The notes: generated from the letters alone by a model not told the origin. Shown: positions 5,888 through 56,169, counted from the stretch's first letter. The stretch: DNA of 64,000 nt from Macrostomum lignano (GCA_002269645.1 NIVC01003827.1:1-64000); one strand, 5' to 3'. Numbers and translations: made by a program.

Positions 5888-8629
5888 CTGCTGCTTCGGC
5901 GAGTCGTCGAGCACGCTGGTTACGGGAGGTTTCTTTCGCTCGCCCAGCTCGTAGCTGATGGCCCAACTGTAGCTGTACTTGGCCGTGTACTGCACAAACT
6001 TTCCAGCTTGGGCGGTGTGGTCTAGCCCGATGCTGCGGACAGTGCAGCCGGACACGGTGCTCCCCGGCATGCGGAATTCCACCTGGGCGCTGGGCTCCAA
6101 GGCCTCCCAGCTGGGCACCGTATCGTGAGGCTCGAGCTGCAGTCTGCACGTGAACAGGTGCGACTTGTACGCACCTGAAGTGGAGTTGTGGTTTGAGGAT
6201 TACTGTGGGAATACATTGTTCCATACATCATCTCCTGCAGCTGATTATGATCTTAAGATACATGAGAGCAAATGCTCTCGTCAGACCTTTCCGTCATCAA
6301 ATGAGATATTCTTTCCTTCAGTATAATGGAAAGACCTGACGGTTACCTGCTCTGTATCTTCAGATCATCATGCGATGGTCAAATGAAAAATGATCCTCTT
6401 ATCTTTGGTGAACCGCCTTGCTATGGCAGGGGCCATCATCTTTAAGCAATATTCGGGTAATTTAGTGTCCTTGTGACGATATGAATATTTTTAGACACTG
6501 CTTTTTCTCTCTCATATAGCTTACATCGATACCGCGAAAAGTCTCACCGTGGTGCTTTCCGGCAGTTTGGAAATTCGCCACACAATGGCTCGGTACAGAT
6601 GCTCGTACTTGGCCACACCAACATTGGCCTCCATGATGGACGGCGGGAAGAAGCCCTGTGCCATCTGCGTGATCCGCTCGATGCCCTTGATGCGGCCCGG
6701 CTTGCGCAGCGCCGAGTGCACCGAGTTGTACTTAAACTTGCCTTCCTGTCGGAAGAAATAGACCCAGTCTTCCGGGATCGGAATACGGATCTCGATGTCC
6801 TCTGCGGGGACCTCGTGGCAGCGTGTGTGGCTGCTGAAGAAGCCGGGCACCATGACGTCGCAGCGGATGTTGACCCGGTCCTGGTCGATGGAGAACACAC
6901 ACTTCAGCTGAAGGGGAAGCTCCTGGTTCTCGCGCAGGGCAACTCGAAACCGCATGAGCTCGAAACGACAAGCATCCAGAGGGTAGAAGCATATCATGTG
7001 CGAGTTGTTGTATCGGTCCATGTCCACCACCGCGTGGAACTCGGGCTCGTACATGTCGATCCAGTCGTCGTGCAGCATGGGAATAATGTCCTGCCGCTTG
7101 ACCACCTCGTTTCCGTAGCGCCACTTGTCGTTGAGTCCCAGCTCAACGTAGGGCATGCCGGTCACAAAGGCGGTGAAGAACACCCGAGTACGCGACTTCT
7201 GCCGCTGAATGCGGCCCTGCAAGTCCACGGCAGCCTCGTACTCGTCCTGAACGTAGGCGCAGACCTCCTCCTTGACGTAGTCGACAGGCGCTTTATTGCG
7301 GTCTCTGACCACCGTAGAGCGCATCATGAGGTCCTCGATCTGCCACATCAGAGACCGGATGTCGTGCTGGTTGATGCTGCCAAACTTTACAATCTCCTGT
7401 CGCACAGGCATGTGATCCAACACGTCTGTGGTCTTCGGCTTGGCCAGCATGTTCTGAATATTTTTTAGCGACCACTTTTCTGTGCGAACGCCGACCATCT
7501 CCTTGTAGGTCAGCAGGTTTACCTTGAAGATGTGCAGCTTTCCGTATTTATCGTACTGCTGCAGCTTAGCTTGGCTTAGTTGAAAAAAGGGCTCCAGGCG
7601 AATGCATCGGTACGGATTCTCCAGGTCCTCCAGGTTGAACAACTTCAGCGTTGGTCGTTCCTGCTCCCATACCAGACGCACCAGAATGTCCTTCCACCAA
7701 CGGTCAGAAGTGAACTTGCTCATTTGCTTGCCGAGCTTCTTCTTGGTTTCTGGCATGCGAATAAAAAGTTTCCAGCTGTCGCCCATGCAGGCTGGGTGAA
7801 ACGGCTCAAACGGCGGCATCGGCGGCGTCTCCGAGCGTAGGCGGCTCCGGCGACCCGACTCTTCAGCTTCCCCCGCTGCCGGCCGGGCCCAGTCGACCTC
7901 AAAAGCTGCCGCCTCGCCAGCACCCGACGCCTCGCCCCAAACATTATCGTCGGCACCTAGGTCGGCAGTGGTGGTTTCCGCTCCGCCAAGATTGAAAGGG
8001 TTGAAACGGTTCTGATCGTCATCATCTTCGTTTACCGTTTCCGTGAAGGCGGCAGCTGCTGCTGCTGCTGCTGCTTTCGCTTGAGCCCTCGACGGCGGCC
8101 CCTGGATGTGCGGCACCACTTCCGCCTCTGCTGCTTCGTCGCCGCCACCGATTTTGACACTCACCGAGACGCCAGCGCCGCCGTCCTCGTCGCCGCTGTT
8201 GTCACTCTCCGGATAGATGGTGGACAGCGGGTCAAAGCCGTTTGCCTCCCCGTCAGTCAGCTCTGCTTTAGTCTCCGCGGGCTCTTCTACCGCAACATTT
8301 TTTGGAGTTTCCGCTGCTTGTGGCGACGCAGTCATCAGAAACGGATCGTCGGCCTCCAAAGATGCGACTCGAAACGGGTTGTTCCCGGACAGCGTGTCCT
8401 GCCGAGGCACGCCCTTGGCCCGATCCCGCCTCGTCGGCGTGGATTCCTCCGCGGGCAGGATTTTTGCTGTAGCCGCCGCCGAGAAGTTGGAAAAATCTCC
8501 AGCAGCGTCAAATGGATTTTCCTCGTCAGGAGCGAGGTCGACTGCTTCGCCAAAAGCGCTGGAGAAGGGGTCGAAGGCAGACTGGTCAAACACGCCATCG
8601 TCAAGTTCATCCTGGTCCTGTTTGGCCAT
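5498..8629 (-). CDS. Stonin / stoned-B-like endocytic adaptor (N-terminal DPF/NPF motifs, stonin-homology domain, mu-homology domain); exons 6548-8629 and 5498-6174
   Basis: Long ORF with FDPF, ENPF, NNPF, DDPF and FNPF motifs, and mu-homology sequence (YVKEEV...RVFFTAFVTGMPYVELGLND, FHAVVD, FYPLDACRFELMRFR, AKYEHLYRAIVWRI). Exon 2 reads AYKSHLFTCRL...VEFRMP...VRSI...KFVQYTAKYSY. The ATG at 8629 is inferred. The exon junction is off by one base (see findings). Confidence 0.88.
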
Positions 8630-11600
8630 GGCGGAGGAATCAGCTTGGACGCAAAGAACGGAATTGACTGACGCCCCCTCAGTTGGGCCGGTGCTGATTT
8701 CTGCTCCGGATTCCTTCTGCCTCGGAAGAGTTCTCAAAAGTTGCGCCTTCGCTTCCCCTGTTTGCAGTCCGTGAGATCTCCGCACTTTCGCTCACAAGGA
8801 ATGATGAAAAGAAAAAGACTGGACTGAATGGAAATGGAACTCTAGAAGATTTTGTGTGTTAGCATGTGCCCGTGCGCGGGCCTGAGCAGGCGTGCTGGCT
8901 GGCGGCCCGTGTACTACCGCGTCTCTCCAGCTCAACTCTGCGATGAGGAGCTCCAGATTAGTGGCTCTCTGCGGCTGTTTCTCCCTCCTTCTCTCTGCTG
9001 CCGGCGACACGCCTCTCCCCCTGCCTTCTTTGCTTACCCTCTGCGACAATCCCCTCCCCAGCTTCTCTGCACTTCTCTCCGGGCCCGCCAGCCCCGGCTC
9101 CTGTACTCATGCATGCGCGCATTTTTGCGGCAAGAGCAAGAGCTGGCTGACTGCCTGCCCCCAGTCCTCATCCGCCCTCTTCCCCCGCTCCCTCTGAGAT
9201 GCATTCTCGGCTCTCTCTCTCTCTCCAGTTCCTCTCGCTCATGGGAGCCAAGCCAGATCGATAGCCCGCGGACCTCCCTACCCTCCTCCTAATGGCCGGT
9301 GTGCTGCACTCAGCCACTGACTTCGCCCCCTTCTGTCTCTGCCTTCCCTCCGAGGTCCTGCATTGGCTTTAAAGCACCTTTCGAAAGTGGGAGAAAAAGT
9401 TGAGCTCTCTCTTGTCCGATGAAACTGTATCGGATGAGCTGCTGCTGCTAGTCCGATCTGCCTCGTCTCCCTTGTTCCCCATCGCCTTGTGTCGGGCAGG
9501 CATGGCTGATAATTCACGAGATTTAAACAGTGCTTTGACAGTGGATAAAGAGAATAATGCGCAGGGGGTAAATTAGGGATGGAGGAATAAGAAAGCAGAG
9601 GAGGAGCTCAGATAAACGGAGAACGCTCGGTCAGGGAGACAGTCGGAATAAAATTTTGCGTCCCCTAGGAATTCTGAAATTTCCGCGAGCTCAGCTGGCG
9701 TGTTTCTGCAGTCTCCGGTCCCTCAGTTTCTCCCATCTTTCTCGCATTTCCTGCTATCTGTTTTTCCCGCTCTTCCGGGCCTCAAAGCGAGTCGGAGCGG
9801 AGCGGTCGCACGAGCTGCACTTGAGCTGGGAGCAGAGCATGACGAGCGAGCGCTTGGCCATCCGTTTCTTTGATTCTGTTCTCACAGTTTGCTATTGCAT
9901 TTAGGTTTGCCTAACTAATTAAAAAGAAAGTGGCTTTTAATACTCGGGAAGACTCGTGTTCAAGGGTTCTTTCATTTTTGTCCATTTGCGCTTTAGGAAA
10001 CTGCTCATCCGAGACGGCGGTGGCGGATTTGAATGAAGTTTTACCGGTGCGAGATGCGAGAGTGGAAACTGAAGAGGATGGAATTTGAGAGGCAGGGTGT
10101 CGGTTGGGGGGATGACAGCTTAAATAAAGCCCAGATGTGATTAGGAATGTTAAAGAGGCTTACGGTTAAGAGCGAAGAGTGATAAAACAGTGAGGGCTGC
10201 TAAGGTTGAGCAGCAGGGGTGGACAGTGAGGGTGAGCAGCAGGGGTCAAAGCATCATCAGGCCTAGAGCAGTGTGTCATGCTGCCTTTCGGAGAGTTCGT
10301 GACGGAGCAGCCGGTTTCGCTTCCTGCTTTCGCTAGTGAGTTTCCTTCTCTTTGAAGACAGTTGCTATGCCATGGGCTCGGATTCGGAACAGGTAATTAA
10401 TTGCATGTGCTCTGTCTGATATGCCTCAAAGGTAAAGAGGTGAAAGCGTTAATTTTATCCATATTTGCTCGCAAGCTGCTTGTGACGTCTCGGGTCGTGC
10501 GACTCGTCAGGGATGAATTTCACAGGCACGCCAGAACTGTGCTACCCATGCTACTACTTGGAGTAGGCAGCTGGAGGAATCTCATTGAAATTAGTGCAAT
10601 TTCTGTATTGATTCAAGTGCGCTGACTTGAGCTCTAAATTAAATATTTACAAATGTCATCTCAAAACGTCCCAATGGCTTTCGAACTTGAGACTTCATGC
10701 AATTCTGCTTCACGTTCCTAATTTGTAGCACTTCTTATATTAATTTCATTAATTGAAGCTGTAAGCAAACAATTTAAAAAAAGTGCTAAAAAATTCGCGA
10801 TATTGAATCGAACTTCGCTGGGCTGAACTCGCCAACTGTGCGAGGGAATTATCTGACAAATCGTTCCACTTTCGGAGTTGCTGAACTCCCTCCTATCGCT
10901 TTGATATCAGCCAAACTGCTTGTCGCTATTCCAGCACTGGCTGCACTTCTCTCTGTCTGTCTTTTCAGCGGCCTTGCCACTCGGCAGGCTCGGAAAAAAC
11001 CTCCGGCTAAAAAATGCCCCCCCCTTGCTGGGTAGCAACAGAATTGCCGCTACTCTCAAAACACTGCGACACGCGATGTCCTCATTTCGAATCCCCATTC
11101 TCTGTCTTTGAGTGGTCGATTTCTGAAGTGCTCAAAGTGATAGACACGTGCGACCGCTTCTGTTTGATCTGCAGGTTCGAATTTATTGTAAGAGCGAATG
11201 ATTGTGGTGTGATTAACTGGGTCTAAAAGACTATTCGGTTTGAGATAATTGTGGGTAGGATATTCCATGCATCATAGTAGCGTTTTATCCCTGAATCCGG
11301 TAGAGTGTACAGGGTACAATACGAGCTACAAGTACACGAGTCCTTACTCAGGTAACAGCTGTCGGCTTTCCGGAATCTGGGGCGTCAGGACGCTGGGCCA
11401 CTAACCAAATTTAGCTAGGTGTTATATTACGCTTATTAGTTTAATTAAATTTGCACCGCACAATGGGCTTGGGTCCCAGTGGGTCAGTAAAATCGCGACT
11501 AAAAAGCCAGACCACCACGCCTCCCGACCGGCCCTACCCCACGCCAGCCAATCACACCGCGGGAGGGGGAGAGAGAGAAACTGAGCCTGCTGCCTGGCCC

Positions 11601-12178: not shown

Positions 12179-13357
12179 ATGGCAAGCTCGGCTGCTGACG
12201 TCAACAACTGCACGGAGCACTCGGTACTCGGCTCCCCGGGCGCGGCGCAGGCCTCCCTCATCTTCTACGCCTGCCTCGGCTTCATCGGGGTCGTTGGCAA
12301 CGCGCACGTCATGCTGGTGTTCCGGTCAAGCCGGGAGCGCAGCCTCCGCTTCCTTGTGCTGTTTCTGAGCTGCCTGGACCTGGGCATCTCGGGCCTCATC
12401 CTGCCCCTGGACTGCTACCGGGTGTACTCGGAGTTCGCCACGAGGGGCCGCCTACCCTGGCACTTCCTGGGCACCGTGATTCTCTCCTCAAGACAGGCGG
12501 CCTTCGAGCTGGAAGGCTGCGTGCTGGTGCTGATCGCCGTGGACCGCTTCCTGTGCGTGGTGAAGGCGCGGCAGGAAGGCCTCTCCTACAGGCGCACCGC
12601 GGCCGCCCTGCTCGCCAGCGCCGCCGCCGTGGTTGCCTTGGAAACCAGCATCGTGGTCACGCACTACGTCATCGAGGACGACTGCGAGTTGAAGACAAAA
12701 CTGGAGACCTCCCTGCTGGTGTTCTACGGCGCCCTGGGCACGTGCTCGATCGCGCTGGTGGCCGGCCTGTACGCCAGGATCCTCTCCTTCGTGGCCGCCA
12801 TGGAGCGGCGCAGGTCTCACCGTCGGAAGCGCGCGCGCCAGACTCTGAGCAGCCTGACCATGCAGCCACGCGGCCGGCCGCGGGCCACCCTCGGCAGCAG
12901 CACCGGGGCGGCGCCGTCGCAGTCGCCGGCGAACGCGGCCACGCCGATTGCCGAGACGGCGGAGGCAGCCGCGCTGGCCGAGGAGGCGCCCTTGAACAAC
13001 GGGCATGAGCCGCCGCGCTGCCCGCTGGTGCAGTTCAGCCTCGATGTCCAGCCGACGGCGGCGGAGGGCAACGCCGGCGACGACTCGGATGCTCCGGTCG
13101 GGTGTGCAGAGCCGCGCGGGCCGTCCCCGGTGGCCTGGTTCCCGCTGCGCCTCGCCCTGATGTTGTTCGGCGCCTCCGTGCTGTTCTACCTCAGCCTCCT
13201 GCCGGGCATCCTCATCAACTTCAGCATCATCAGCGACTCGCCGCTGCACCGCCTCTACTACCTGAACTCCTCCCTGAACTTTGCCGTGTACGCGCTGTTC
13301 AACCCCAAATTCAGGTCCGACCTGCGCGGCCTGTACTTGAAACGGTGCGGGCTGTGA
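12179..13357 (+). CDS. Intronless orphan class A (rhodopsin-like) GPCR, 392 aa
   Basis: Seven hydrophobic segments; GN in TM1, L-x-x-x-D (LSCLD) in TM2, DRF at the end of TM3, P in TM6, NFAVY plus helix-8 FR after TM7; GC3-rich codons. Confidence 0.88.
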   Translation: MASSAADVNNCTEHSVLGSPGAAQASLIFYACLGFIGVVGNAHVMLVFRSSRERSLRFLVLFLSCLDLGISGLILPLDCYRVYSEFATRGRLPWHFLGTVILSSRQAAFELEGCVLVLIAVDRFLCVVKARQEGLSYRRTAAALLASAAAVVALETSIVVTHYVIEDDCELKTKLETSLLVFYGALGTCSIALVAGLYARILSFVAAMERRRSHRRKRARQTLSSLTMQPRGRPRATLGSSTGAAPSQSPANAATPIAETAEAAALAEEAPLNNGHEPPRCPLVQFSLDVQPTAAEGNAGDDSDAPVGCAEPRGPSPVAWFPLRLALMLFGASVLFYLSLLPGILINFSIISDSPLHRLYYLNSSLNFAVYALFNPKFRSDLRGLYLKRCGL

Positions 13358-18894: not shown

Positions 18895-20163
18895 AGATGT
18901 GATAGATGCGGCTCTGCAATTTGATAGATAAGGCTCTACAATGTGATAGATAAGGCTCTGCAATGTGATAGATGCGGCTCTGCAATTTGATAGATAAGGC
19001 TCTGCAATGTGATAGATAAGGCTCTGCAATGTGATAGATGCGGCTCTGCAATTTGATAGATAAGGCTCTACAATGTGATGGATGCGGCTCTGCAATTTGA
19101 TAGATAAGGCTCTACAATGTGATAGATAAGGCTCTGCAATGTGATAGATGCGGCTCTGCAATTTGATAGATAAGGCTCTACAATGTGATAGATAAGGCTC
19201 TGCAATGTGATAGATGCGGCTCTGCAATTTGATAGATAAGGCTCTGCAATGTGATAGATAAGGCTCTGCAATGTGATAGATGCGGCCCTGCAATGTGATA
19301 GATAAGGCTCTGCAATGTGATAGATAAGGCTCTGCAATGTGATAGATGCGGCTCTGCAATTTGATAGATAAGGCTCTGCAATGTGATGGATGCGGCTCTG
19401 CAATTTGATAGATAAGGCTCTACAATGTGATAGATAAGGCTCTGCAATGTGATAGATAAGGCTCTGCAATGTGATAGATAAGGCTCTGCAATGTGATAGA
19501 TGCGGCTCTGCAATTTGATAGATAAGGCTCTGCAATGTGATAGATAAGGCTCTGCAATGTGATAGATGCGGCTCTGCAATTTGATAGATAAGGCTCTGCA
19601 ATGTGATAGATAAGGCTCTGCAATGTGATAGATGCGGCCCTGCAATGTGATAGATAAGGCTCTGCAATGTGATAGATAAGGCTCTGCAATGTGATAGATG
19701 CGGCTCTGTAATGTGATAGATAAGGCTCTGCAATGTAATAGATAAGGCTCTGCAATGTGATAGATAAGGCTCTGCAATGTGATAGATAAGGCTCTGCAAT
19801 GTGATAGATAAGGCTCTGCAATGTGATAGATAAGGCTCTGCAATGTGATAGATAAGGCTCTGCAATGTGATAGATAAGGCTCTGCAATGTGATAGATAAG
19901 GCTCTGCAATGTGATAGATAAGGCTCTGCAATGTGATAGATAAGGCTCTGCAATGTGATAGATAAGGCTCTGCAATGTGATAGATAAGGCTCTGCAATGT
20001 GATAGATAAGGCTCTGCAATGTGATAGATAAGGCTCTGCAATGTGATAGATAAGGCTCTGCAATGTGATAGATAAGGCTCTGCAATGTGATAGATAAGGC
20101 TCTGCAATGTGATAGATAAGGCTCTGCAATGTGATAGATAAGGCTCTGCAATGTGATAGATAG
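18895..20163. repeat. 22-bp minisatellite (GATAAGGCTCTGCAATGTGATA / GATGCGGCTCTGCAATTTGATA), about 57 copies
   Basis: Direct reading; core shared with the FReD intron arrays. Confidence 0.95.
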
Positions 20164-20470: not shown

Positions 20471-22665
20471 TCACGGCGAAATGCTGACCATGAGTTTGAG
20501 CTCCTTCATCGGAACATCGCCTGTCGGGAGTTTCCAAAACATGTTCTGCCTGTGGTGGATGTACACATTCGAGTAGATGCCTGTTGGGTTCGGCTTCATG
20601 CAACCGTTATACCACCAGCCACCGCCGCCTCTCACGCGGGAGCAATGCGCACTTGACACAACATCATTTTCAGCATCTAAAGTGGAGAACTGCATTCCTG
20701 AGTGGTAAATCATCGCATCGTGATTGACGCTGCAGCGGTCGCTGAGAAACGGAGCCACCGTCAGAGTGTAGTTGGTGAGCTGGCTCTGCACCATGAAGTT
20801 CGGGTGCTCGCAGAAGTAGCTGACATTGTCCCAGGAGGTCATCTCCACCCTCAGCTTCTCGGATCCGCTTGCGGTGAGAGCGTGGAGGGACCGGAGGCCT
20901 GGAGAGGTCAGGGTGACTTGTCCAGTACATCACTCATGACTCTCCATCACCAGCTCTGCTCATGACTCACCCATCACCAGCTCTGCTCATGACTCACCCA
21001 TCACCAGCTCTGCTTATGACTCACCCATCACCAGCTCTGCTCATGACTCACCCATCACCAGCTCTGCTCATGACTCACCCATCGCCAGCTCTGCTCATGA
21101 CTCAGCCATCACCAGCTCTGCTCATGACTCACCCATCACCAGCTCTGCTCATGACTCGACCATCACCAGCTCTGCTCATGACTCATCCATCACCAGCTCT
21201 GCTCATGACTCACCCATCACCAGCTCTGCTCATGACTCATCCATCGCCAGCTCTGCTCATGACTCACCCATCGCCAGCTCTGCTCATGACTCAGCCATCA
21301 CCAGCTCTGCTCATGACTCACCCATCACCAGCTCTGCTCATGACTCATCCATCACCAGCTCTGCTCATGACTCAGCCATCACCAGCTCTGCTCATGACTC
21401 ATCCATCACCAGCTCTGCTCATGACTCACCCATCACCAGCTCTGCTCATGACTCATCCATCGCCAGCTCTGCTCATGACTCACCCATCGCCAGCTCTGCT
21501 CATGACTCACCCATCCACCAATTCTCCGAGTTGCCGAAGCCGCTCTCGTACTCAGCCCACGTCCGGTTGAACAGAACCGAGTTGCTGACGCGCTGCATGA
21601 ACACGCAGTAGCGACTGTCCTCAACGACGGCCTGCTTTGGACAGGGCTCTGAAATGGGGTGGGTGCGGCTCTGCAATGGGGTGGGTTCGGCTCTGAAATG
21701 GGGTGGGTGCGGCTCTGCAATGGGGTGGGTGCGGCTCAGCAATGGGGTGGGTGCGGCTCTGCAATGGGGTGGGTGCGGCTCTGCAATGGGGTGGGTGCGG
21801 CTCTGCAATGGGGTGGGTTCGGCTCTGCAATGGGGTGGGTGCGGCTCTGCAATGGGGTGGGTGCGGCTCTGCAATGGGGTGGGTGCGGCTCTGCAATGGG
21901 GTGGGTGCGGCTCTGCAATGGGGTGGGTGCGGCTCTGCAATGGGGTGGGTTCGGCTCTGAAATGGGGTGGGTGCGGCTCTGCAATGGGGTGGGTGCGGCT
22001 CTGCAATGGGGTGGGTGCGGCTCTGCAATGGGGTGGGTGCGGCTCTGCAATGGGGTGGGTTCGGCTCTGCAATGGGGTGGGTGCGGCTCTGCAATGGGGT
22101 GGGTGCGGCTCTGCAATGGGGTGGGTGCGGCTCTGCAATGGGGTGGGTGCAGCTCTGCCCTTTGGTTGTCTCAGTGTTACAGTCCAGTGATCTCATCGAA
22201 AATCAACCTGAGCTTCACCTGTCGAGTAGCAGGTGTCGGTGAGCTCATCGAAGGAGCTGCGAGTCTCCGAGGTCTCAGAGCCCCAGCAGTCGATCGGCCT
22301 GTCGGCCATGCAGCATCTCTGATGCAGCTGGTGGAAGTCGAACCACCTGCAGGTTTTCCACGCGGTGCACAAGGTCGCGCACTCGATGAAGCTGCGAGCG
22401 GCCACCTGAGACGATGAGGCAGCTGCCGGTGTCTCAGGAGTCGTAGCACCTTGCCGCTTCATCTTGAAGCTGCAGGTGTCTGCAAGTTTAGATTCAGGTT
22501 ATCTGCTGTGCATGAAGCGCCACTGCGGGCTGCCAAGAGCAATGAACAAATGAGTGAAATGAACAACTCACAGGCAGTCGCGTGAGTTCCTAACTGCAGA
22601 AGCAGTGCGGCTGTCTCGATCATCAAGAAGACACGCGAATTTGTGCTCAGTTCGATGTGTGCCAT
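20471..22665 (-). CDS. Secreted PAN/apple-like + fibrinogen C-terminal domain protein, copy L; exons 22572-22665, 22219-22479, 21511-21648, 20471-20898
   Basis: GT-AG introns with compatible phases (1,1,1). Hydrophobic leader; Cys pattern ECATLC...C.WF.F...C; FReD motifs FNRTWAEYESGFG, WWMGL, LRVEM, GMQFSTLD.END, HC...GGGGWWY..C..NPTG. Confidence 0.85.
20935..21510. repeat. 27-bp intronic minisatellite containing the splice donor (sense unit GTGAGTCATGAGCAGAGCTGGTGATGG), about 21 copies
   Basis: Fills most of intron 3 of FReD copy L; only about 4 copies in copy R (25805-25935). Confidence 0.92.
21650..22150. repeat. 22-bp intronic minisatellite (sense unit CCCCATTGCAGAGCCGCACCCA), about 23 copies
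   Basis: Intron 2 of FReD copy L; abuts the acceptor; inverted counterpart at 25150-25666. Confidence 0.93.
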
Positions 22666-23440
22666 GATGGAAATTTTTAGCAGGCTGCCACAAGCTGTCT
22701 GCTTACCCTGTTGTGAAAGCAGACATGATTTATAGAGCCCGCTTGCGTGTCTCTTGTGTGATGCGACAGCCTCTCAAACCTCCCGCCAATGGCAGCAGCC
22801 GGACCGTGAATTGCTGAGAGGTTGCTGCTATGAAGAAACTGTGAGAAATGAGCAGGGATGCTGCAAATCTTGCAGGACTTCACAAGGGCGCTGCCACCCC
22901 CAAGGCAAGACAAAATTAACGAGCATTTTCCCTAACAAGCTAACTAGCTTGAAACTCAACAATGTGGAAAACCGCTTGAATGCTGCAAACTCCCAGATGC
23001 CATGAGGCAGCAGTCGAAGGGAAACTGCCGACTCTGCGTGGGCTGTGTCTGCAACCGAAGTACTTTTATGAAACCTTTGTCACTTTTGAGTCACCATATG
23101 CCACTGTTTATTGACTAATGCTGCTTCCATTCGCTTTGGCGGCTGAGCGGCAGGTGAATATTCATAAAAACTATAATAAATAATAGTATCCGTTAGAAAC
23201 CATAGAAACCATAACAACCATAACACCAATTACCATAGTAACCATAGCAACCATCAAGTCCTGAGAACAAGTAGCGTGGAATTTCATGGGAAGCAAGTAC
23301 ATGTACCTCGCAAGTTCGAGCCCCACTTTTTGGCCCACATTTAAAGAATTTCGCCAGCTTCCTGTAAGCAAAGTTTACTGTTAGCTTGATTGCTACTTGA
23401 TTAAATAATATCTGAAGAATTTCGTCAGATTAATTTTTAC

Positions 23441-24144
23441 CAGAGGCGCCAGCACCAGAGGCGCCAGCACCAGAGGCGCCAGCACCAGAGGCGCCAGCAC
23501 CAGAGGCGCCAGCACCAGAGGCGCCAGCACCAGAGGCGCCAGCACCAGAGGCGCCAGCACCAGAGGCGCCAGCACCAGAGGCGCCAGCACCAGAGGCGCC
23601 AGCACCAGAGGCGCCAGCACCAGAGGCGCCAGCACCAGAGGCGCCAGCACCAGAGGCGCCAGCACCAGAGGCGCCAGCACCAGAGGCGCCAGCACCAGAG
23701 GCGCCAGCACCAGAGGCGCCAGCACCAGAGGCGCCAGCACCAGAGGCGCCAGCACCAGAGGCGCCAGCACCAGAGGCGCCAGCACCAGAGGCGCCAGCAC
23801 CAGAGGCGCCAGCACCAGAGGCGCCAGCACCAGAGGCGCCAGCACCAGAGGCGCCAGCACCAGAGGCGCCAGCACCAGAGGCGCCAGCACCAGAGGCGCC
23901 AGCACCAGAGGCGCCAGCACCAGAGGCGCCAGCACCAGAGGCGCCAGCACCAGAGGCGCCAGCACCAGAGGCGCCAGCACCAGAGGCGCCAGCACCAGAG
24001 GCGCCAGCACCAGAGGCGCCAGCACCAGAGGCGCCAGCACCAGAGGCGCCAGCACCAGAGGCGCCAGCACCAGAGGCGCCAGCACCAGAGGCGCCAGCAC
24101 CAGAGGCGCCAGCACCAGAGGCGCCAGCACCAGAGGCGCCAGCA
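23441..24144. repeat. Perfect 15-bp array (CAGAGGCGCCAGCAC), about 47 copies
   Basis: No variant units seen; lies in the spacer between the two FReD genes. Confidence 0.96.
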
Positions 24145-24636
24145 GACAGATCAAGTAAAGATTCAATGAGACAAAGTCATCCTTAGTTGCCGTGACAAGG
24201 TAAATAATTCCCGTTGAAGAGAAACGGATTTTCGTGGGCTCAGAGTTTACTCTTCAATCTTGATTGTTCTGAGCAAACTGCCAGGGAGCGGAAAGCAGCG
24301 CCGCCCAGTGTCGAGCACTCAGTCAGCGTTGAGAAGCACCGGAAGAGCTGATCGGCACAGGGCGCATTCCAGTGAACAAACACTGCGTTTCACATCAACT
24401 TTTTCGAATTCACATCTTCCAGACTCTTCCCGGCAGACAGAGGCAGCTTTCCCTGCTCATGCAATCTTCAAAATCAAGTTTGCTTCTGAATGCCGGAAGG
24501 AGAACACGGATGGAGAAGGATCGATAAATGTATTCGTTCTGCTCGCACCTCAAGCTTGCATAAAAGCGATCCAAGAGACCAGAGTTCCCGCTTAGCGATT
24601 CGGTTTGAAAAACTCTGAACAGCATTTGAACCGCGC

Positions 24637-26398
24637 ATGACCGCTCCTGAGACTTTGCTAAGCCAGCAGCCGATCGCCATCGCCACTCTGCTGCTGGTGA
24701 CATCGCCAGGACTCGCGGCTGCCTGTAAGTACTTAACCAACCAAATGGAACGGACTGTACTGTACTGCATCGAATCATTCTATAAATCAACTCTCTCAGA
24801 CTCCTGCAGCTACCGTCTGAGGCCGTCACCCGAAATTCACACTTTCGCGGGAGCCACGGCAGCTGCCTCATCGTCTCAGGTGGCCGCTCGCAGCTTCATC
24901 GAGTGCGCGACCTTGTGCACCGCGTGGAAAACCTGCAGGTGGTTCGACTTCCACCAGCTGCATCAGAGATGCTGCATGGCCGACAGGCCGATCGACTGCT
25001 GGGGCTCTGAGACCTCGGAGACTCGCAGCTCCTTCGATGAGCTCACCGACACCTGCTACTCGACAGGTGAAGCTCAGATTGATTTTCGATGAGATCTGCC
25101 GGACTGTCACACTGAGTGGACCAAAGGGCGCACCACACTGAGCTCAACCTCCCCATTGCAGAGCCGCACCCACCCCATTGCAGAGCCGCACCCACCCCAT
25201 TGCAGAGCCGCACCCACCCCATTGCAGAGCCGCACCCACCCATTGCAGAGCCGCACCCACCCCATTGCAGAGCCGCACCCTCCCCATTTCATAGACTCAC
25301 CCACCCCATTGCAGAGCCGCACCCACCCCATTTCATAGACTCACCCACACCATTGCAGAGCCGCACCCACTCCATTGCAGAGCCGCACCCACCCCATTGC
25401 AGAGCCGCACCCACCCCATTGCAGAGCCGCACCCACCCCATTGCAGAGCCGCACCCACCCCATTGCAGAGCCGCACCCACCCCATTGCAGAGCCGCACCC
25501 ACTCAATTGCAGAGCCGCACCCACCCCATTGCAGAGCCGCACCCACCCCATTGCAGAGCCGCACCCACCCCATTTCAGAGCCGCACCCACCCCATTGCAG
25601 AGCCGCACCCACCCCATTGCAGAGCCGCACCCACCCCATTGCAGAGCCGCACCCACCCCATTTCAGAGCCCTGTCCAAAGCAGGCCGTCGTTGAGGACAG
25701 TCGCTACTGCGTGTTCATGCAGCGCGTCAGCAACTCGGTTCTGTTCAACCGGACGTGGGCTGAGTACGAGAGCGGCTTCGGCAACTCAGAGAATTGGTGG
25801 ATGGGTGAGTCATGAGCAGAGCTGGTGATGGGTGATAGGTGAGTCATGAGCAGAGTTGGTGATGGTGATGGTGAGTCATGAGCAGAGCTGGTGATGGGTG
25901 AGTCATGAGCAGAGCTGGTGATGGGTGAGTCATGATTGATGTACTGGACAAGTCACCCTGACCTCTCCAGGTCTCCGGTCCCTCCACGCTCTCACCGCAA
26001 GCGGATCCGAAAAGCTGAGGGTGGAGATGACCTCCTGGGACAATGTCAGCTACTTCTGCGAGCACCCGAACTTCATGGTGCAGAGCCAGCTCACCAACTA
26101 TACTCTGACGGTGGCACCGTTTCTCAGCGATCGCTGCAGCGTCAATTACGATGCGATGATTTACCACTCAGGCATGCAGTTCTCCACTTTGGACGCTGAC
26201 AATGACGCTGCATCAAGTGTGCATTGCTCCCGCGAGAGAGGCGGCGGTGGCTGGTGGTTCAAGAGATGCGTGTTGCCGAACCCGACAGGGATCTACTCGA
26301 ATGTGTCCATCCACCGCAGGCAGAACATGGTCTGGAAAGTAGAATCTGTTGACATTCCGTTAAAAAGTATCAAGCTAATGGTCAGCGCCACTCCATGA
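24637..26398 (+). CDS. Secreted PAN/apple-like + fibrinogen C-terminal domain protein, copy R; exons 24637-24724, 24800-25066, 25667-25804, 25971-26398
   Basis: Same exon structure and phases as copy L in inverted orientation; donors gtaagt, gtgaag, gtgagt; acceptors ctctcag, tttcag, ctccag; same FReD motifs. Confidence 0.87.
25150..25666. repeat. 22-bp intronic minisatellite of FReD copy R
   Basis: CCCCATTGCAGAGCCGCACCCA units ending at the acceptor ccccatttcag|AGCC. Confidence 0.93.
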
Positions 26399-27520: not shown

Positions 27521-38276
<10,756 letters not shown>

Positions 38277-47422: not shown

Positions 47423-47954
47423 CAGAGGCGCCAGCACCAGAGGCGCCAGCACCAGAGGCGCCAGCACCAGAGGCGCCAGCACCAGAGGCGCCAGCACCAG
47501 AGGCGCCAGCACCAGAGGCGCCAGCACCAGAGGCGCCAGCACCAGAGGCGCCAGCACCAGAGGCGCCAGCACCAGAGGCGCCAGCACCAGAGGCGCCAGC
47601 ACCAGAGGCGCCAGCACCAGAGGCGCCAGCACCAGAGGCGCCAGCACCAGAGGCGCCAGCACCAGAGGCGCCAGCACCAGAGGCGCCAGCACCAGAGGCG
47701 CCAGCACCAGAGGCGCCAGCACCAGAGGCGCCAGCACCAGAGGCGCCAGCACCAGAGGCGCCAGCACCAGAGGCGCCAGCACCAGAGGCGCCAGCACCAG
47801 AGGCGCCAGCACCAGAGGCGCCAGCACCAGAGGCGCCAGCACCAGAGGCGCCAGCACCAGAGGCGCCAGCACCAGAGGCGCCAGCACCAGAGGCGCCAGC
47901 ACCAGAGGCGCCAGCACCAGAGGCGCCAGCACCAGAGGCGCCAGCACCAGAGGC
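47423..47954. repeat. Second perfect 15-bp array (CAGAGGCGCCAGCAC), about 35 copies
   Basis: Unit identical to 23441-24144, same orientation, unrelated flanks. Confidence 0.96.
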
Positions 47955-49094
47955 TCCAGGAGTTGCAGAAATTTCACTAATGCTGTAATTGGCTCACACC
48001 TGGACACCTACATACGCGTGGGGCGATGTTTCTCGCAGTTTCCAGCTAGTGGCAACAAATTATCTTAGAAAAGAGCATGCTTAGGCCAATCAAATTCTGC
48101 TCATAACTTGCCCTAAACTGGCTTTTTAGGCTGATATAAAAGCTACGAATTATAATCCAATAAGTACAAGTGCATTTCTAGGAAAGTCCATAAATTGTCG
48201 TGTAGCGATCGAGGACAACCTGAGTCGGCCAGGCCGGGACTTGTAGGACAATGAAATCCGAGTGGCATTGATAAGGGGATACAGAAATGGGGGAGAGGAA
48301 GCGCGGAGGACCGGGTCCCAACAGCTGCTACAGAAGCCTCTCTTGCCTCACTGTCCGAGACTCTTCCGCTGTTCCATTGCTGAGCACACGGCAATCAATT
48401 CCCCCGATCCCCAATTCCGACTCCCAATTCGAAAGCCATTTCTGAGCAGCCCTGACCAGCAGCTCAGGACCTGGCGGTGTTCGCGGACAAGCATTTAAAA
48501 GGCTTTAATAAAACCCCGCTGCCACTTCAGGCGGGTCCCCGAAGCAGTTTCTCCAAATTTTAGGCGCCAATTTCTGAACTCATATTCGCCTGCGACAGAC
48601 GGGATCGAGAGACGGTTGGAGGGCGGTTGGCAGAGAAGAGAAATTTTCACGACAAACTTCTTCCGCCGCAAAAATTGTCGATAGCAACAACTTTATTTGC
48701 CCGACAGCGGTTGCCGGGGAAATAAAAAAATAGAGACAGAGTTAGAGAGATTTCTCGGCAAACGAAGGAAGCGAACCAGAGAGAGAGAGAGAGAGACTGC
48801 AGCCACCGCCTGCTCCATCAATTCTTAATCAGCTCACTGCGAACTGCAACTCCGATCCCCCTGGAACCGGGCAGTTTCAGCCCGAACTCCCCAGGGGGAG
48901 CGCCGGGATTCCACTTTGAACTTTGAGGCCGCGCCACTCGAGAAATTCGCGGGCTATCGGGGAGAGGCCGGACTCGAGTCCCAGCGGCTGAGCTGTCTGC
49001 CAGTGAAAATGTTATTTACGATACATATCGGCTAACTGGCTTGCGTGCACGAAAGTTATCCGGTTGGGTTGAGGTGTGACTCACAGCCATGAGG

Positions 49095-53477: not shown

Positions 53478-56065
53478 TGGATAGAGGCGCCAGATCGGGG
53501 AACTGACAGAGGCGCCAGATCGGGGAACTGACAGAGGCGCCAAATCGGGGAACTGATAGAGGCGCCAGATCAGGGAACTGACAGAGGCGCCAAATCGGGG
53601 AACTGATAGAGGCGCCAAATCGGGGAACTGATAGAGGCGCCAAATCGGGGAACTGACAGAGGCGCCAGATCGGGGAACTGACAGAGGCGCCAGATCGGGG
53701 AACTGATAGAGGCGCCAGATCGGGGAACTGACAGAGGCGCCAGATCAGGGAACTGACAGAGGCGCCAAATCGGGGAGCTGATAGAGGCGCCAAATCGGGG
53801 AACTGATAGAGGCGCCAAATCGGGGAACTGACAGAGGCGCCAGATCGGGGAACTGATAGAGGCGCCAGATCGGGGAACTGACAGAGGCGCCAGATCGGGG
53901 AACTGACAGAGGCGCCAGATCGGGGAACTGATAGAGGCGCCAGATCGGGGAACTGACAGAGGTGCCAAATCGGGGAACTGATAGAGGCGCCAAATCGGGG
54001 AACTGATAGAGGCGCCAAATCGGGGAACTGACAGAGGCGCCAGATCGGGGAACTGACAGAGGTGCCAAATCGGGGAACTGATAGAGGCGCCAAATCGGGG
54101 AACTGATAGAGGCGCCAAATCGGGGAACTGACAGAGGCGCCAGATCGGGGAACTGACAGAGGCGCCAGATCGAGGAACTGATAGAGGCGCCAAATCGGGG
54201 AACTGATAGAGGCGCCAAATCGGGGAACTGATAGAGGCGCCAAATCGGGGAACTGACAGAGGCGCCAGATCGAGGAACTGATAGAGGCGCCAAATCGGGG
54301 AACTGACAGAGGCGCCAGATCGGGGAACTGACAGAGGCGCCAGATCGAGGAACTGATAGAGGCGCCAAATCGGGGAACTGATAGAGGCGCCAGATCGGGG
54401 AACTGATAGAGGCGCCAGATCGGGGAACTGATAGAGGCGCCAGATCGGGGAACTGATAGAGGCGCCAGATCGGGGAACTGATAGAGGTGCCAGATCGGGG
54501 AACTGATAGAGGCGCCAGATCGGGGAACTGACAGAGGTGCCAGATCGGGGAACTGATAGAGGCGCCAGATCGGGGAACTGATAAAGGCGCCAGATCGGGG
54601 AACTGATAGAGGTGCCAGATCAGGGAACTGATAGAGGCGCCAGATCGGGGAACTGACAGAGGTGCCAGATCAGGGAACTGATAGAGGCGCCAGATCGGGA
54701 AACTGACAGAGGTGCCAGATCGGGGAACTGATAGAGGCGCTAAATCGGGGAACTGACAGAGGTGCCAGAGCAGGGAACTGATAGAGGCGCCAGATCGGGG
54801 AACTGACAGAGGTGCCAGATCAGGGAACTGATAGAGGCGCCAGATCGGGGAACTGACAGAGGCGCCAGATCGGGGAACTGATAGAGGCGCCAGATCGGGG
54901 AACTGACAGAGGCGCCAGATCAGGGAACTGACAGAGGCGCCAAATCGGGGAGCTGATAGAGGCGCCAAATCGGGGAACTGATAGAGGCGCCAAATCGGGG
55001 AACTGACAGAGGCGCCAGATCGGGGAACTGATAGAGGCGCCAGATCGGGGAACTGACAGAGGCGCCAGATCGGGGAACTGACAGAGGCGCCAGATCGGGG
55101 AACTGATAGAGGCGCCAGATCGGGGAACTGACAGAGGTGCCAAATCGGGGAACTGATAGAGGCGCCAAATCGGGGAACTGATAGAGGCGCCAAATCGGGG
55201 AACTGACAGAGGCGCCAGATCGGGGAACTGACAGAGGTGCCAAATCGGGGAACTGATAGAGGCGCCAAATCGGGGAACTGATAGAGGCGCCAAATCGGGG
55301 AACTGACAGAGGCGCCAGATCGGGGAACTGACAGAGGCGCCAGATCGAGGAACTGATAGAGGCGCCAAATCGGGGAACTGATAGAGGCGCCAAATCGGGG
55401 AACTGATAGAGGCGCCAAATCGGGGAACTGACAGAGGCGCCAGATCGAGGAACTGATAGAGGCGCCAAATCGGGGAACTGACAGAGGCGCCAGATCGGGG
55501 AACTGACAGAGGCGCCAGATCGAGGAACTGATAGAGGCGCCAAATCGGGGAACTGATAGAGGCGCCAGATCGGGGAACTGATAGAGGCGCCAGATCGGGG
55601 AACTGATAGAGGCGCCAGATCGGGGAACTGATAGAGGCGCCAGATCGGGAACTGATAGAGGTGCCAGATCGGGGAACTGATAGAGGCGCCAGATCGGGGA
55701 ACTGACAGAGGTGCCAGATCGGGGAACTGATAGAGGCGCCAGATCGGGGAACTGATAAAGGCGCCAGATCGGGGAACTGATAGAGGTGCCAGATCAGGGA
55801 ACTGATAGAGGCGCCAGATCGGGGAACTGACAGAGGTGCCAGATCAGGGAACTGATAGAGGCGCCAGATCGGGAAACTGACAGAGGTGCCAGATCGGGGA
55901 ACTGATAGAGGCGCTAAATCGGGGAACTGACAGAGGTGCCAGAGCAGGGAACTGATAGAGGCGCCAGATCGGGGAACTGACAGAGGTGCCAGATCAGGGA
56001 ACTGACAGAGGCGCCAGATCGGGGAACTGACAGAGGCGCCAGATCGGGGAACTGATAGAGGTGCC
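53478..56065. repeat. 25-bp minisatellite (GA(T/C)AGAGGCGCCA(G/A)ATCGGGGAACT), about 103 copies, with a ~1175-bp internal duplication
   Basis: Rare variants recur 1174-1175 bp apart (53777/54952; 54741/55915). Confidence 0.95.
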
Positions 56066-56169
56066 ATTCGACTTTCGAGCTTAACCTCCAGACCACTTAA
56101 AAAACTTCATCAGCAGTTGCGCCTCAGCCTCTAAAACTGCTTCATCAACGTTCACTCCATCAGCCTCAC

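Follow-up and report, generated by a model that had tools for sequence, protein, structure and literature searches.

A head-to-head pair of PAN-like/fibrinogen-related genes in Macrostomum lignano with a pattern of probable mosaic gene conversion

A stretch of 64,000 nt from the flatworm Macrostomum lignano (GCA_002269645.1, NIVC01003827.1:1-64000; the window) holds two head-to-head genes, L and R, both intact with four exons and 306 codons and both predicted to encode a leader, a PAN-like Cys domain and a fibrinogen-related domain (FReD). The evolutionary pattern of the pair matches the well-known mosaic gene conversion of duplicated recognition genes, and the explanation favoured here, to which a probability of about three in four is given, is an ancient head-to-head duplication of a secreted, lectin-type PAN-like/FReD gene followed by repeated arm-to-arm conversion that overwrote the gene middles. 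An earlier reading of the window from the sequence alone (the sequence-only reading) had proposed an old inverted duplication homogenised in this way and had named uniform synonymous divergence (dS) along the genes as evidence against it. The observed dS was stepped, at 0, 0.04, 0.18 and 0.25 and then saturated, and the proposal is supported by these steps together with an abrupt 5' edge and the sharing of introns 2 and 3 but not of intron 1.

Gene L: 20471-22665, minus strand; coding exons 22665-22572, 22479-22219, 21648-21511 and 20898-20471; spliced open reading frame (ORF) of 306 aa with leader, PAN-like Cys domain and a FReD without its first ~40 profile positions
Gene R: 24637-26398, plus strand; coding exons 24637-24724, 24800-25066, 25667-25804 and 25971-26398; spliced ORF of 306 aa, architecture as in L
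Left arm: 20483-22428, minus strand; the sole part of L with DNA homology to R (blastn and repeat search)
Right arm: 24857-26386, plus strand; the counterpart in R (blastn and repeat search)
Spacer between the arms: 22429-24856, no strand; 2.4 kb, unique, with both promoters, the leader exons, intron 1 and the first ~18 exon 2 codons of each gene

Silent divergence along the two genes

The description of two head-to-head four-exon genes is borne out by the spliced ORFs, with GT-AG at all introns and matching intron phases, and the limits given for the similar core in the sequence-only reading (22430-20672 and 24858-26197) are right to within a few bases. No third copy of the FReD gene was found within the window. 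The repeat search returned the inverted arms as 21480-22076 against 25239-25835 (597 nt, 96%) and 20483-20945 against 25924-26386 (463 nt, 89%), and arm-to-arm blastn gave nothing significant outside L 22428-20483 against R 24857-26386. No alignment between L and R was obtained for exon 1, intron 1, the initial ~55 nt of exon 2, the sequence upstream of the genes or the 3' untranslated regions (UTRs), in agreement with the earlier statement of divergence in the leader exons, at the exon 2 start and in the 3' UTRs; amino-acid identity of the leader exons is 28%, and the only promoter match in blastn was an 11-mer that was not significant (E=7.4). The leaders of both genes are followed by the motif A-Y-[TS]-C-S-[FY]-[KR] and share the same intron phase, which argues that the original duplication covered the whole gene.

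TATA-like boxes lie 69 nt upstream of the L ATG (22729-22734) and 77 nt upstream of the R ATG (24560-24565), and AATAAA occurs at +198 after the R stop codon, with no canonical AATAAA in the 400 nt past the L stop codon. As a signal peptide the L leader (22572-22665, minus strand; MAHIELSTNSRVFLMIETAALLLQLGTHATA) is weak beside those of R and the paralogue P0011, as it contains charged residues and its hydrophobic core is short; over 9 aa its hydropathy peaks at 1.9, whereas R reaches 3.1. L may in truth have another first exon or start codon than the one predicted.

Inside the arms the counts of the sequence-only reading were reproduced: a single amino-acid difference, H/Y224, across residues 50-240 (AAASSSQ to FSTLDA), and 23 in the last 66 residues, with introns 2 and 3 and their minisatellites common to both arms by segment alignment. 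The 5' boundary within exon 2 is sharp, passing from unalignable sequence to 100% identity, and from there identity is 205/205 in the exon 2 core, 95.7% in the intron 2 array, 137/138 in exon 3 and 43/44 in the unique flank of intron 3. Nonsynonymous divergence (dN) and dS, from NG86 counts on the two sequences, divide the coding sequence as follows.

Exon 2 core of L, youngest tract: 22219-22428, minus strand; codons 50-118, dS 0 (0/43 synonymous sites); 0 differences from R 24857-25066, sharp 5' edge at CGGCAGCTGCC
Exon 2 core of R, youngest tract: 24857-25066, plus strand; identical to L
Exon 3: codons 119-164; dS 0.04
Exon 4, codons 165-240: L 20672-20898, minus strand, and R 25971-26197; dS 0.18, dN/dS 0.03, with 8 synonymous and 1 nonsynonymous differences; stratum of middle age
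Codons 241-266: L 20594-20671, minus strand, and R 26198-26275; Ca2+ loop and disulfide-bounded wall of the presumed ligand site, 10 replacements; dS 0.255, dN/dS 0.84
Codons 241-280: dS 0.25, dN/dS 0.65
Codons 281-306: L 20474-20551, minus strand, and R 26318-26395; proportion of synonymous differences (pS) 0.81, saturated, dN 0.30; oldest coding stratum, outside detectable conversion

Synonymous differences stand at 1/69 sites in the young stratum against 8/49 in the middle one (Fisher p=0.004) and at 6/26 sites in codons 241-280 against 13/16 in codons 281-306 (Fisher p=0.0004). The longest difference-free run spans 329 of the 774 alignable coding nt, among which there are 57 differences, and was reached in none of 200,000 permutations (p<5e-6); the permutation test on third positions of identical codons gave p=1.4e-4. 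Divergence at 4-fold degenerate sites follows the same trend across the five strata (0, 0.06, 0.09, 0.15, 0.5). At third codon positions the youngest strata have a G+C content of 0.83-0.85 and the unconverted ends one of 0.54-0.73, a gradient that fits the expectation from GC-biased conversion.

The homogenised core does not form the single block that had been described, as codons 165-240 carry their own silent differences. The 8:1 synonymous excess there argues that the protein identity of this block is the result of purifying selection since an older homogenisation and not of recent conversion, and it appears to be the best evidence at hand that both predicted genes are functional. Under the favoured explanation, an old inverted duplication of the whole gene, head-to-head, would have been followed by at least two conversion events differing in age and extent, the younger from the exon 2 core to exon 3 and the older to about codon 280, with the intron 3 minisatellite as the boundary between the younger and older strata. 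Conversion would never have reached the promoter/leader module as a whole, the 3' UTR or the last 26 codons. Since the older homogenisation strong purifying selection has acted on both copies, as seen in the dN/dS of codons 165-240.

The tip and its presumed ligand site

At codon 241 dN rises about 35-fold, from 0.006 to 0.214 (codons 241-266), without a raised dS (0.18 against 0.255), and the ratio of synonymous to nonsynonymous differences changes from 8:1 in codons 165-240 to ~5.5:13.5 in codons 241-280 (p=0.004-0.013). The FSTLDA break is therefore not a break in age, as it had been taken to be: dS is level on both sides (0.18 against 0.25), and what changes is dN/dS, from 0.03 to 0.84. 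The related proposal that the tip escaped conversion holds for the last 26 codons, where pS reaches 0.81 from near codon 281, but not for codons 241-280 at dS 0.25. The 26 ligand-site codons would thus belong to the older converted block and would since have gained their 10 replacements at a near-neutral rate.

To place these replacements, residues of L and R were matched by conserved motif spacing to the FIBCD1 crystal structure, in which the Ca2+ ligands are Asp393 and Asp395, a disulfide joins Cys401 and Cys414 with a cis-peptide at Asn413-Cys414, and the pocket is formed by Tyr405, His415, Tyr431, Ala432 and Trp443 (PMC3908420). Both copies have D239-A-[E/D]241-N-D243 ... C250 ... GGWW[Y/F]xxC264, that is, an acidic Ca2+ motif and the P-subdomain Cys pair, and all ten replacements in codons 241-266 lie within the Ca2+ loop or around the Cys250-Cys264 disulfide. 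Among them are the equivalents of Asp393 (E/D241, L/R), Asn413 (G/R263) and His415 (M/V265), with Glu in L at residue 241, where Asp is invariant in the family. Cys250, Cys264, GGWW, NPxG and the LKSI-like C-terminal strand are kept in both copies, and the tip differences fall in columns that are variable in the family (Mann-Whitney p=0.009).

The canonical acetyl pocket of FIBCD1 and tachylectin 5A appears to be missing from both copies, as judged from motif spacing: His415 corresponds to M265 in L and V265 in R, Tyr431 corresponds to H/R280 and no aromatic residue stands at Tyr405, with the alignment uncertain past residue 275. The AlphaFold2 (AF2) model of the paralogue P0011 has a predicted local distance difference test (pLDDT) score below 50 across residues 215-271, i.e. 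in the tip region. The position of the replacements fits two binding surfaces on one scaffold, and the two specificities of the sequence-only reading are possible, with caution called for by the dN/dS, which never exceeds 1, the seemingly missing pocket and the low-scoring model. The L and R proteins would share a scaffold and probably differ in ligand-binding surface, signal peptide and regulation.

Weighing the explanations

Several observations weigh against the favoured explanation. The comparison rests on two sequences from one assembly; at 4-fold degenerate sites alone the young and middle strata differ by 1/48 against 5/48 (p=0.2, too few sites); the leader of L is weak as a signal peptide; and no protein for L or R was on record in a word-indexed search with the spliced L protein or in exact exon-ORF look-ups, both genes being predictions. 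Further, 7 of 60 nt are mismatched in the 5' flank of intron 2, which also has a 24-nt indel, although it lies between the identical exon 2 core and the near-identical exon 3, which implies that the young stratum is a mosaic of short tracts or that the flank was destabilised by the adjoining array. An artefact of assembly or polishing, with the identical exon 2-3 tract or the second arm arising from collapse, a chimeric join or the polishing of multi-mapped reads, is quite unlikely. In its favour, the genome is repeat-rich and partly duplicated: in the DV1 assembly of M. lignano 180 Mb lie in blocks with identity of 95% or more, and simple or tandem repeats make up 15% of the genome (PMC5730564). 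The pair is also without independent confirmation, as the compared fragment of contig NIVC01002498.1, which differs from window 1-20089 by 3-4% and indels, ends ~400 nt before gene L. However, the minisatellites beside the identical exons carry arm-private variants and unequal copy numbers (21.8 against 4.7), and the graded dS and the synonymous excess in exon 4 resemble evolution rather than polishing. A fold-back (palindromic read) artefact in particular was ruled out, as the 2.4-kb spacer is asymmetric and the leader exons and 3' UTRs at both ends are without homology. It is extremely unlikely that there was no conversion and that the duplication is of uniform age, with core identity kept by extreme purifying selection and the ends unconstrained. 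This is in keeping with the greater family-wide variability of the last ~40 residues than of the FReD core (column entropy 1.6-2.0 against 1.1 bits) and with the dN/dS of 0.03 in codons 165-240, but selection at the protein level cannot leave third positions with 8/38 differences in the tip while exon 3 has only 1/41 and the exon 2 core 0/65, nor does it explain introns 2 and 3 at 96-98% identity beside an unalignable intron 1. Other paralogues of the family reach only 30-44% identity with L and R over the equivalent core, and with a mean column entropy of 1.13 bits the FReD core varies across the family but not between L and R. Given this variable core and the lack of an identical tract in the other pairs inspected (L001 and L003, described below), constraint alone does not yield the L/R identity.

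Two further explanations bear on the tip and on the fate of the copies. Positive (diversifying) selection on the ligand-binding loops, which would drive the tip difference and also select against conversion there, is a possible though doubtful addition: the jump in dN without a rise in dS, the shift in the synonymous to nonsynonymous ratio and the position of 10/10 replacements at the Ca2+ loop or the Cys250-Cys264 disulfide, including the Asp393, Asn413 and His415 equivalents, all speak for it. The diversifying selection suggested by the sequence-only reading was nonetheless not demonstrated, as dN/dS never exceeds 1: it is 0.33 over the whole tip (codons 241-306), significantly below 1 (p=0.002), and the 0.84 of codons 241-266 does not depart from neutrality (p=0.74, at the low power of NG86 on two sequences, on which site tests are likewise without power). 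As the tip columns are variable family-wide, relaxed constraint fits equally well. That one copy, most likely L, is decaying or non-functional, with the tip differences as degeneration, is unlikely. The weak leader, the Glu241 in place of an invariant Asp and the lack of a canonical AATAAA within 400 nt of the stop codon favour decay of L, as does the lack of annotation for either gene, whereas the ORFs and splice sites are intact, the family-invariant Cys, Gly and Trp residues are all kept in both copies and the 8:1 synonymous excess demands constraint on both lineages. The missing annotation was rejected as a sign of non-expression. Transcripts that overlapped repeat annotations were filtered out of the GenBank annotation of Mlig_3_7 (PMC5730564), and this filter accounts for the unannotated state of L and R, as the introns of both genes are filled with minisatellites.

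It is very unlikely that, beyond the conversion favoured here, the pair serves as a recombination cassette, in which the identical inverted core and the splice-junction minisatellites would allow crossovers that flip the 2.4-kb spacer. If this were so, a promoter and signal peptide would be joined to the other tip at each flip, or tips would become chimeric, in germline or even in somatic cells, and the pair would be a flatworm counterpart of the diversification seen in the fibrinogen-related proteins (FREPs) of Biomphalaria.

Domain family, minisatellites and neighbouring genes

Pfam Fibrinogen_C (PF00147) matches residues 132-288 at 114.7 bits in L (E 7.4e-33) and 116.6 bits in R (E 1.9e-33), against a cut-off of 22; the best sequence match in the PDB is ficolin-2 (E 8.5e-24), and a Foldseek search with the AF2 model of the family member P0011 reconfirmed the FReD fold by a match to L-ficolin (E 6.6e-12). 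Of the 221 profile positions, the first one matched is 43 in L and R and lies between 40 and 44 in every M. lignano paralogue tested, by which measure the N-terminal A subdomain of the FReD is truncated or diverged family-wide. The PAN-like Cys domain of the sequence-only reading is plausible but falls short of a Pfam assignment: PAN_1 (PF00024) scores 17.7 bits in L and 19.4 in R on residues 52-91, below the 21.4 cut-off, and reaches 18.7-25.2 bits in the equivalent region of the paralogues P0011, P0026 and P0001 and 25.8 bits in a starfish PAN+FReD protein. The P0011 model has a beta-alpha-beta-beta unit in this region (pLDDT 70-79), and no PAN structure match was retrieved with it. There is no collagen-like Gly-X-Y run in either 306-aa protein and, by Pfam, no immunoglobulin superfamily (IgSF) domain in L or R, where Fibrinogen_C and the weak PAN_1 match are the only ones found. 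L and R are thus members of a FReD family in which the A subdomain is truncated and the N-terminal domain is PAN-like, and are neither ficolins, which have a collagen region, nor Biomphalaria-type FREPs, which have one or two IgSF domains upstream of the FReD.

An exhaustive HMMER search with exon 4 alone as query returned as nearest relatives M. lignano proteins of like architecture, namely P0001 (UniRef A0A1I8JAL4), P0011/P0151 (BOX15_Mlig012238g1/g2), P0016, P0019 and P0029 (Mlig025725g1). These share with L and R the signal peptide, the PAN-like Cys domain, the Fibrinogen_C match from position ~40-44, the C-terminal LKSI-R/K-L motif and an arrangement in local gene pairs. The two pairs inspected differ from L/R in being tandem and not inverted, with exon DNA 71-85% identical and without an identical tract. 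They consist of unannotated FReD paralogues (L001, 8097-9098 and 13592-13759; L003, 14415-15690) in tandem beside the annotated Mlig012238g1 and Mlig025725g1, and the family is therefore larger than the annotation shows. At the protein level the L001 pair is a mosaic, with 45%, 82% and 59% identity along the gene.

Human gamma-globin genes form a pair in which a conversion tract ends at an intronic simple repeat, and the arms of Y-chromosome palindromes undergo arm-to-arm conversion. The pair described here resembles these systems in having a sharp-edged identical tract inside paralogues that diverged earlier and inverted arms that conversion would have kept similar, and differs from them in its far smaller arms (~1.5-1.9 kb) and in unconverted ends that include ligand-site coding sequence. 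The Ca2+-dependent acetyl-group lectins, i.e. ficolins, tachylectin 5A and FIBCD1, have in common with L and R the FReD fold, the D-x-[DE]-N-D Ca2+ motif and the Cys-Cys pair framing site S1. L and R differ from them in having no collagen-like or transmembrane region, in lacking the first ~40 FReD positions and in carrying a PAN-like domain upstream; motif spacing places Met/Val at His415 and seemingly His/Arg at Tyr431, and the pocket is probably absent. FREPs of Biomphalaria glabrata are FReD recognition proteins whose diversity has been attributed to gene conversion and point mutation (PMC12074976); unlike L and R, they have IgSF domains and their diversification is reported to be partly somatic, whereas L/R show only concerted evolution of the germline type at two loci. 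In the sea urchin Sp185/333 (SpTransformer) clusters, shared segments are bounded by micro- and minisatellites proposed to promote duplication and conversion (PMC3091723). These are likewise clustered immune-type genes, and in L/R the dS step coincides with the intron 3 minisatellite; the protein family is unrelated, however, and the repeats flank the Sp185/333 genes but fill introns 2 and 3 of L/R. The general view is unchanged by the pair, as conversion with escape of specificity-determining segments is well known in immune-type multigene families. What the 6-kb locus offers is a converted scaffold, a block under purifying selection, fast-evolving ligand loops and never-converted ends that can be seen separately, and with it a lineage-specific PAN-like/FReD family that lacks annotation is recorded in a flatworm model with transgenesis.

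Tandem Repeats Finder (TRF) delimits the following arrays in and between the two genes.

Intron 2 minisatellite of L: 21645-22158, minus strand; 22-nt units, 23.4 copies, last unit forming the exon 3 acceptor
Intron 2 minisatellite of R: 25151-25670, plus strand; 22-nt units, 23.7 copies
Intron 3 minisatellite of L: 20933-21520, minus strand; 27-nt units beginning GTGAGT, 21.8 copies, at the step in dS from 0.04 to 0.18
Intron 3 minisatellite of R: 25795-25935, plus strand; 27-nt unit as in L intron 3, only 4.7 copies
Array of the 15-nt unit ACCAGAGGCGCCAGC, x47: 23439-24144, between the two promoters; perfect, units 100% identical

The minisatellites flanking exon 3 in both genes resemble its own splice junctions, repeated in tandem. 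In intron 2 the 22-nt units, which carry arm-private variants when listed unit by unit, end in TTGCAG or TTTCAG and begin with AGCC like exon 3, the real acceptor being provided by the last unit, and the 27-nt units of intron 3 begin with GTGAGT and end in TGGTGATGG like the end of exon 3, the first unit being the real donor. Either side of exon 3 thus carries 5 to 24 cryptic splice sites, and read-through of exon 3 meets a TGA after 3 codons. A 22-nt array at 18897-20162, ~300 nt downstream of gene L, has the TGCAGAGCC core in common with the FReD intron 2 array, to which it is 72% similar, in the orientation of L. The ACCAGAGGCGCCAGC unit also occurs in a second array 23 kb off, with arrays at 47423-47959 and 53480-56066, and the 11-nt core AGAGGCGCCAG also lies within a 25-nt array. 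The 135 matches to this core are all on the plus strand, against 0.04 expected, and the arrays containing it look like a dispersed minisatellite family. In all, ~30 distinct long tandem arrays with periods of 4-140 nt and lengths of up to 3.4 kb occur in the window, a density far above the 15% of simple and tandem repeats in the genome (PMC5730564).

Elsewhere in the window there are a single-exon ORF of 392 aa with a rhodopsin-family seven-transmembrane match (12179-13357, plus strand) and the exon set of a DPP4-like S9 peptidase with a GWSYGG motif (~27900-34400, minus strand), both apparently unannotated, and the look-ups found no M. lignano protein for either. The array in an intron of the DPP4-like gene does not abut exons as the FReD arrays do. 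Window 1-20089 aligns to the GenBank Mlig_3_7 contig NIVC01002498.1 (27539-50666) at ~96-97% identity with many indels, mostly in arrays, a difference that reflects either another assembly or a duplicated chromosome block of the DV1 line. A stonin-like ORF at 6521-8785 (minus strand) is 100% identical to BOX15_Mlig034083g2 over the aligned part, which covers 92% of the ORF.

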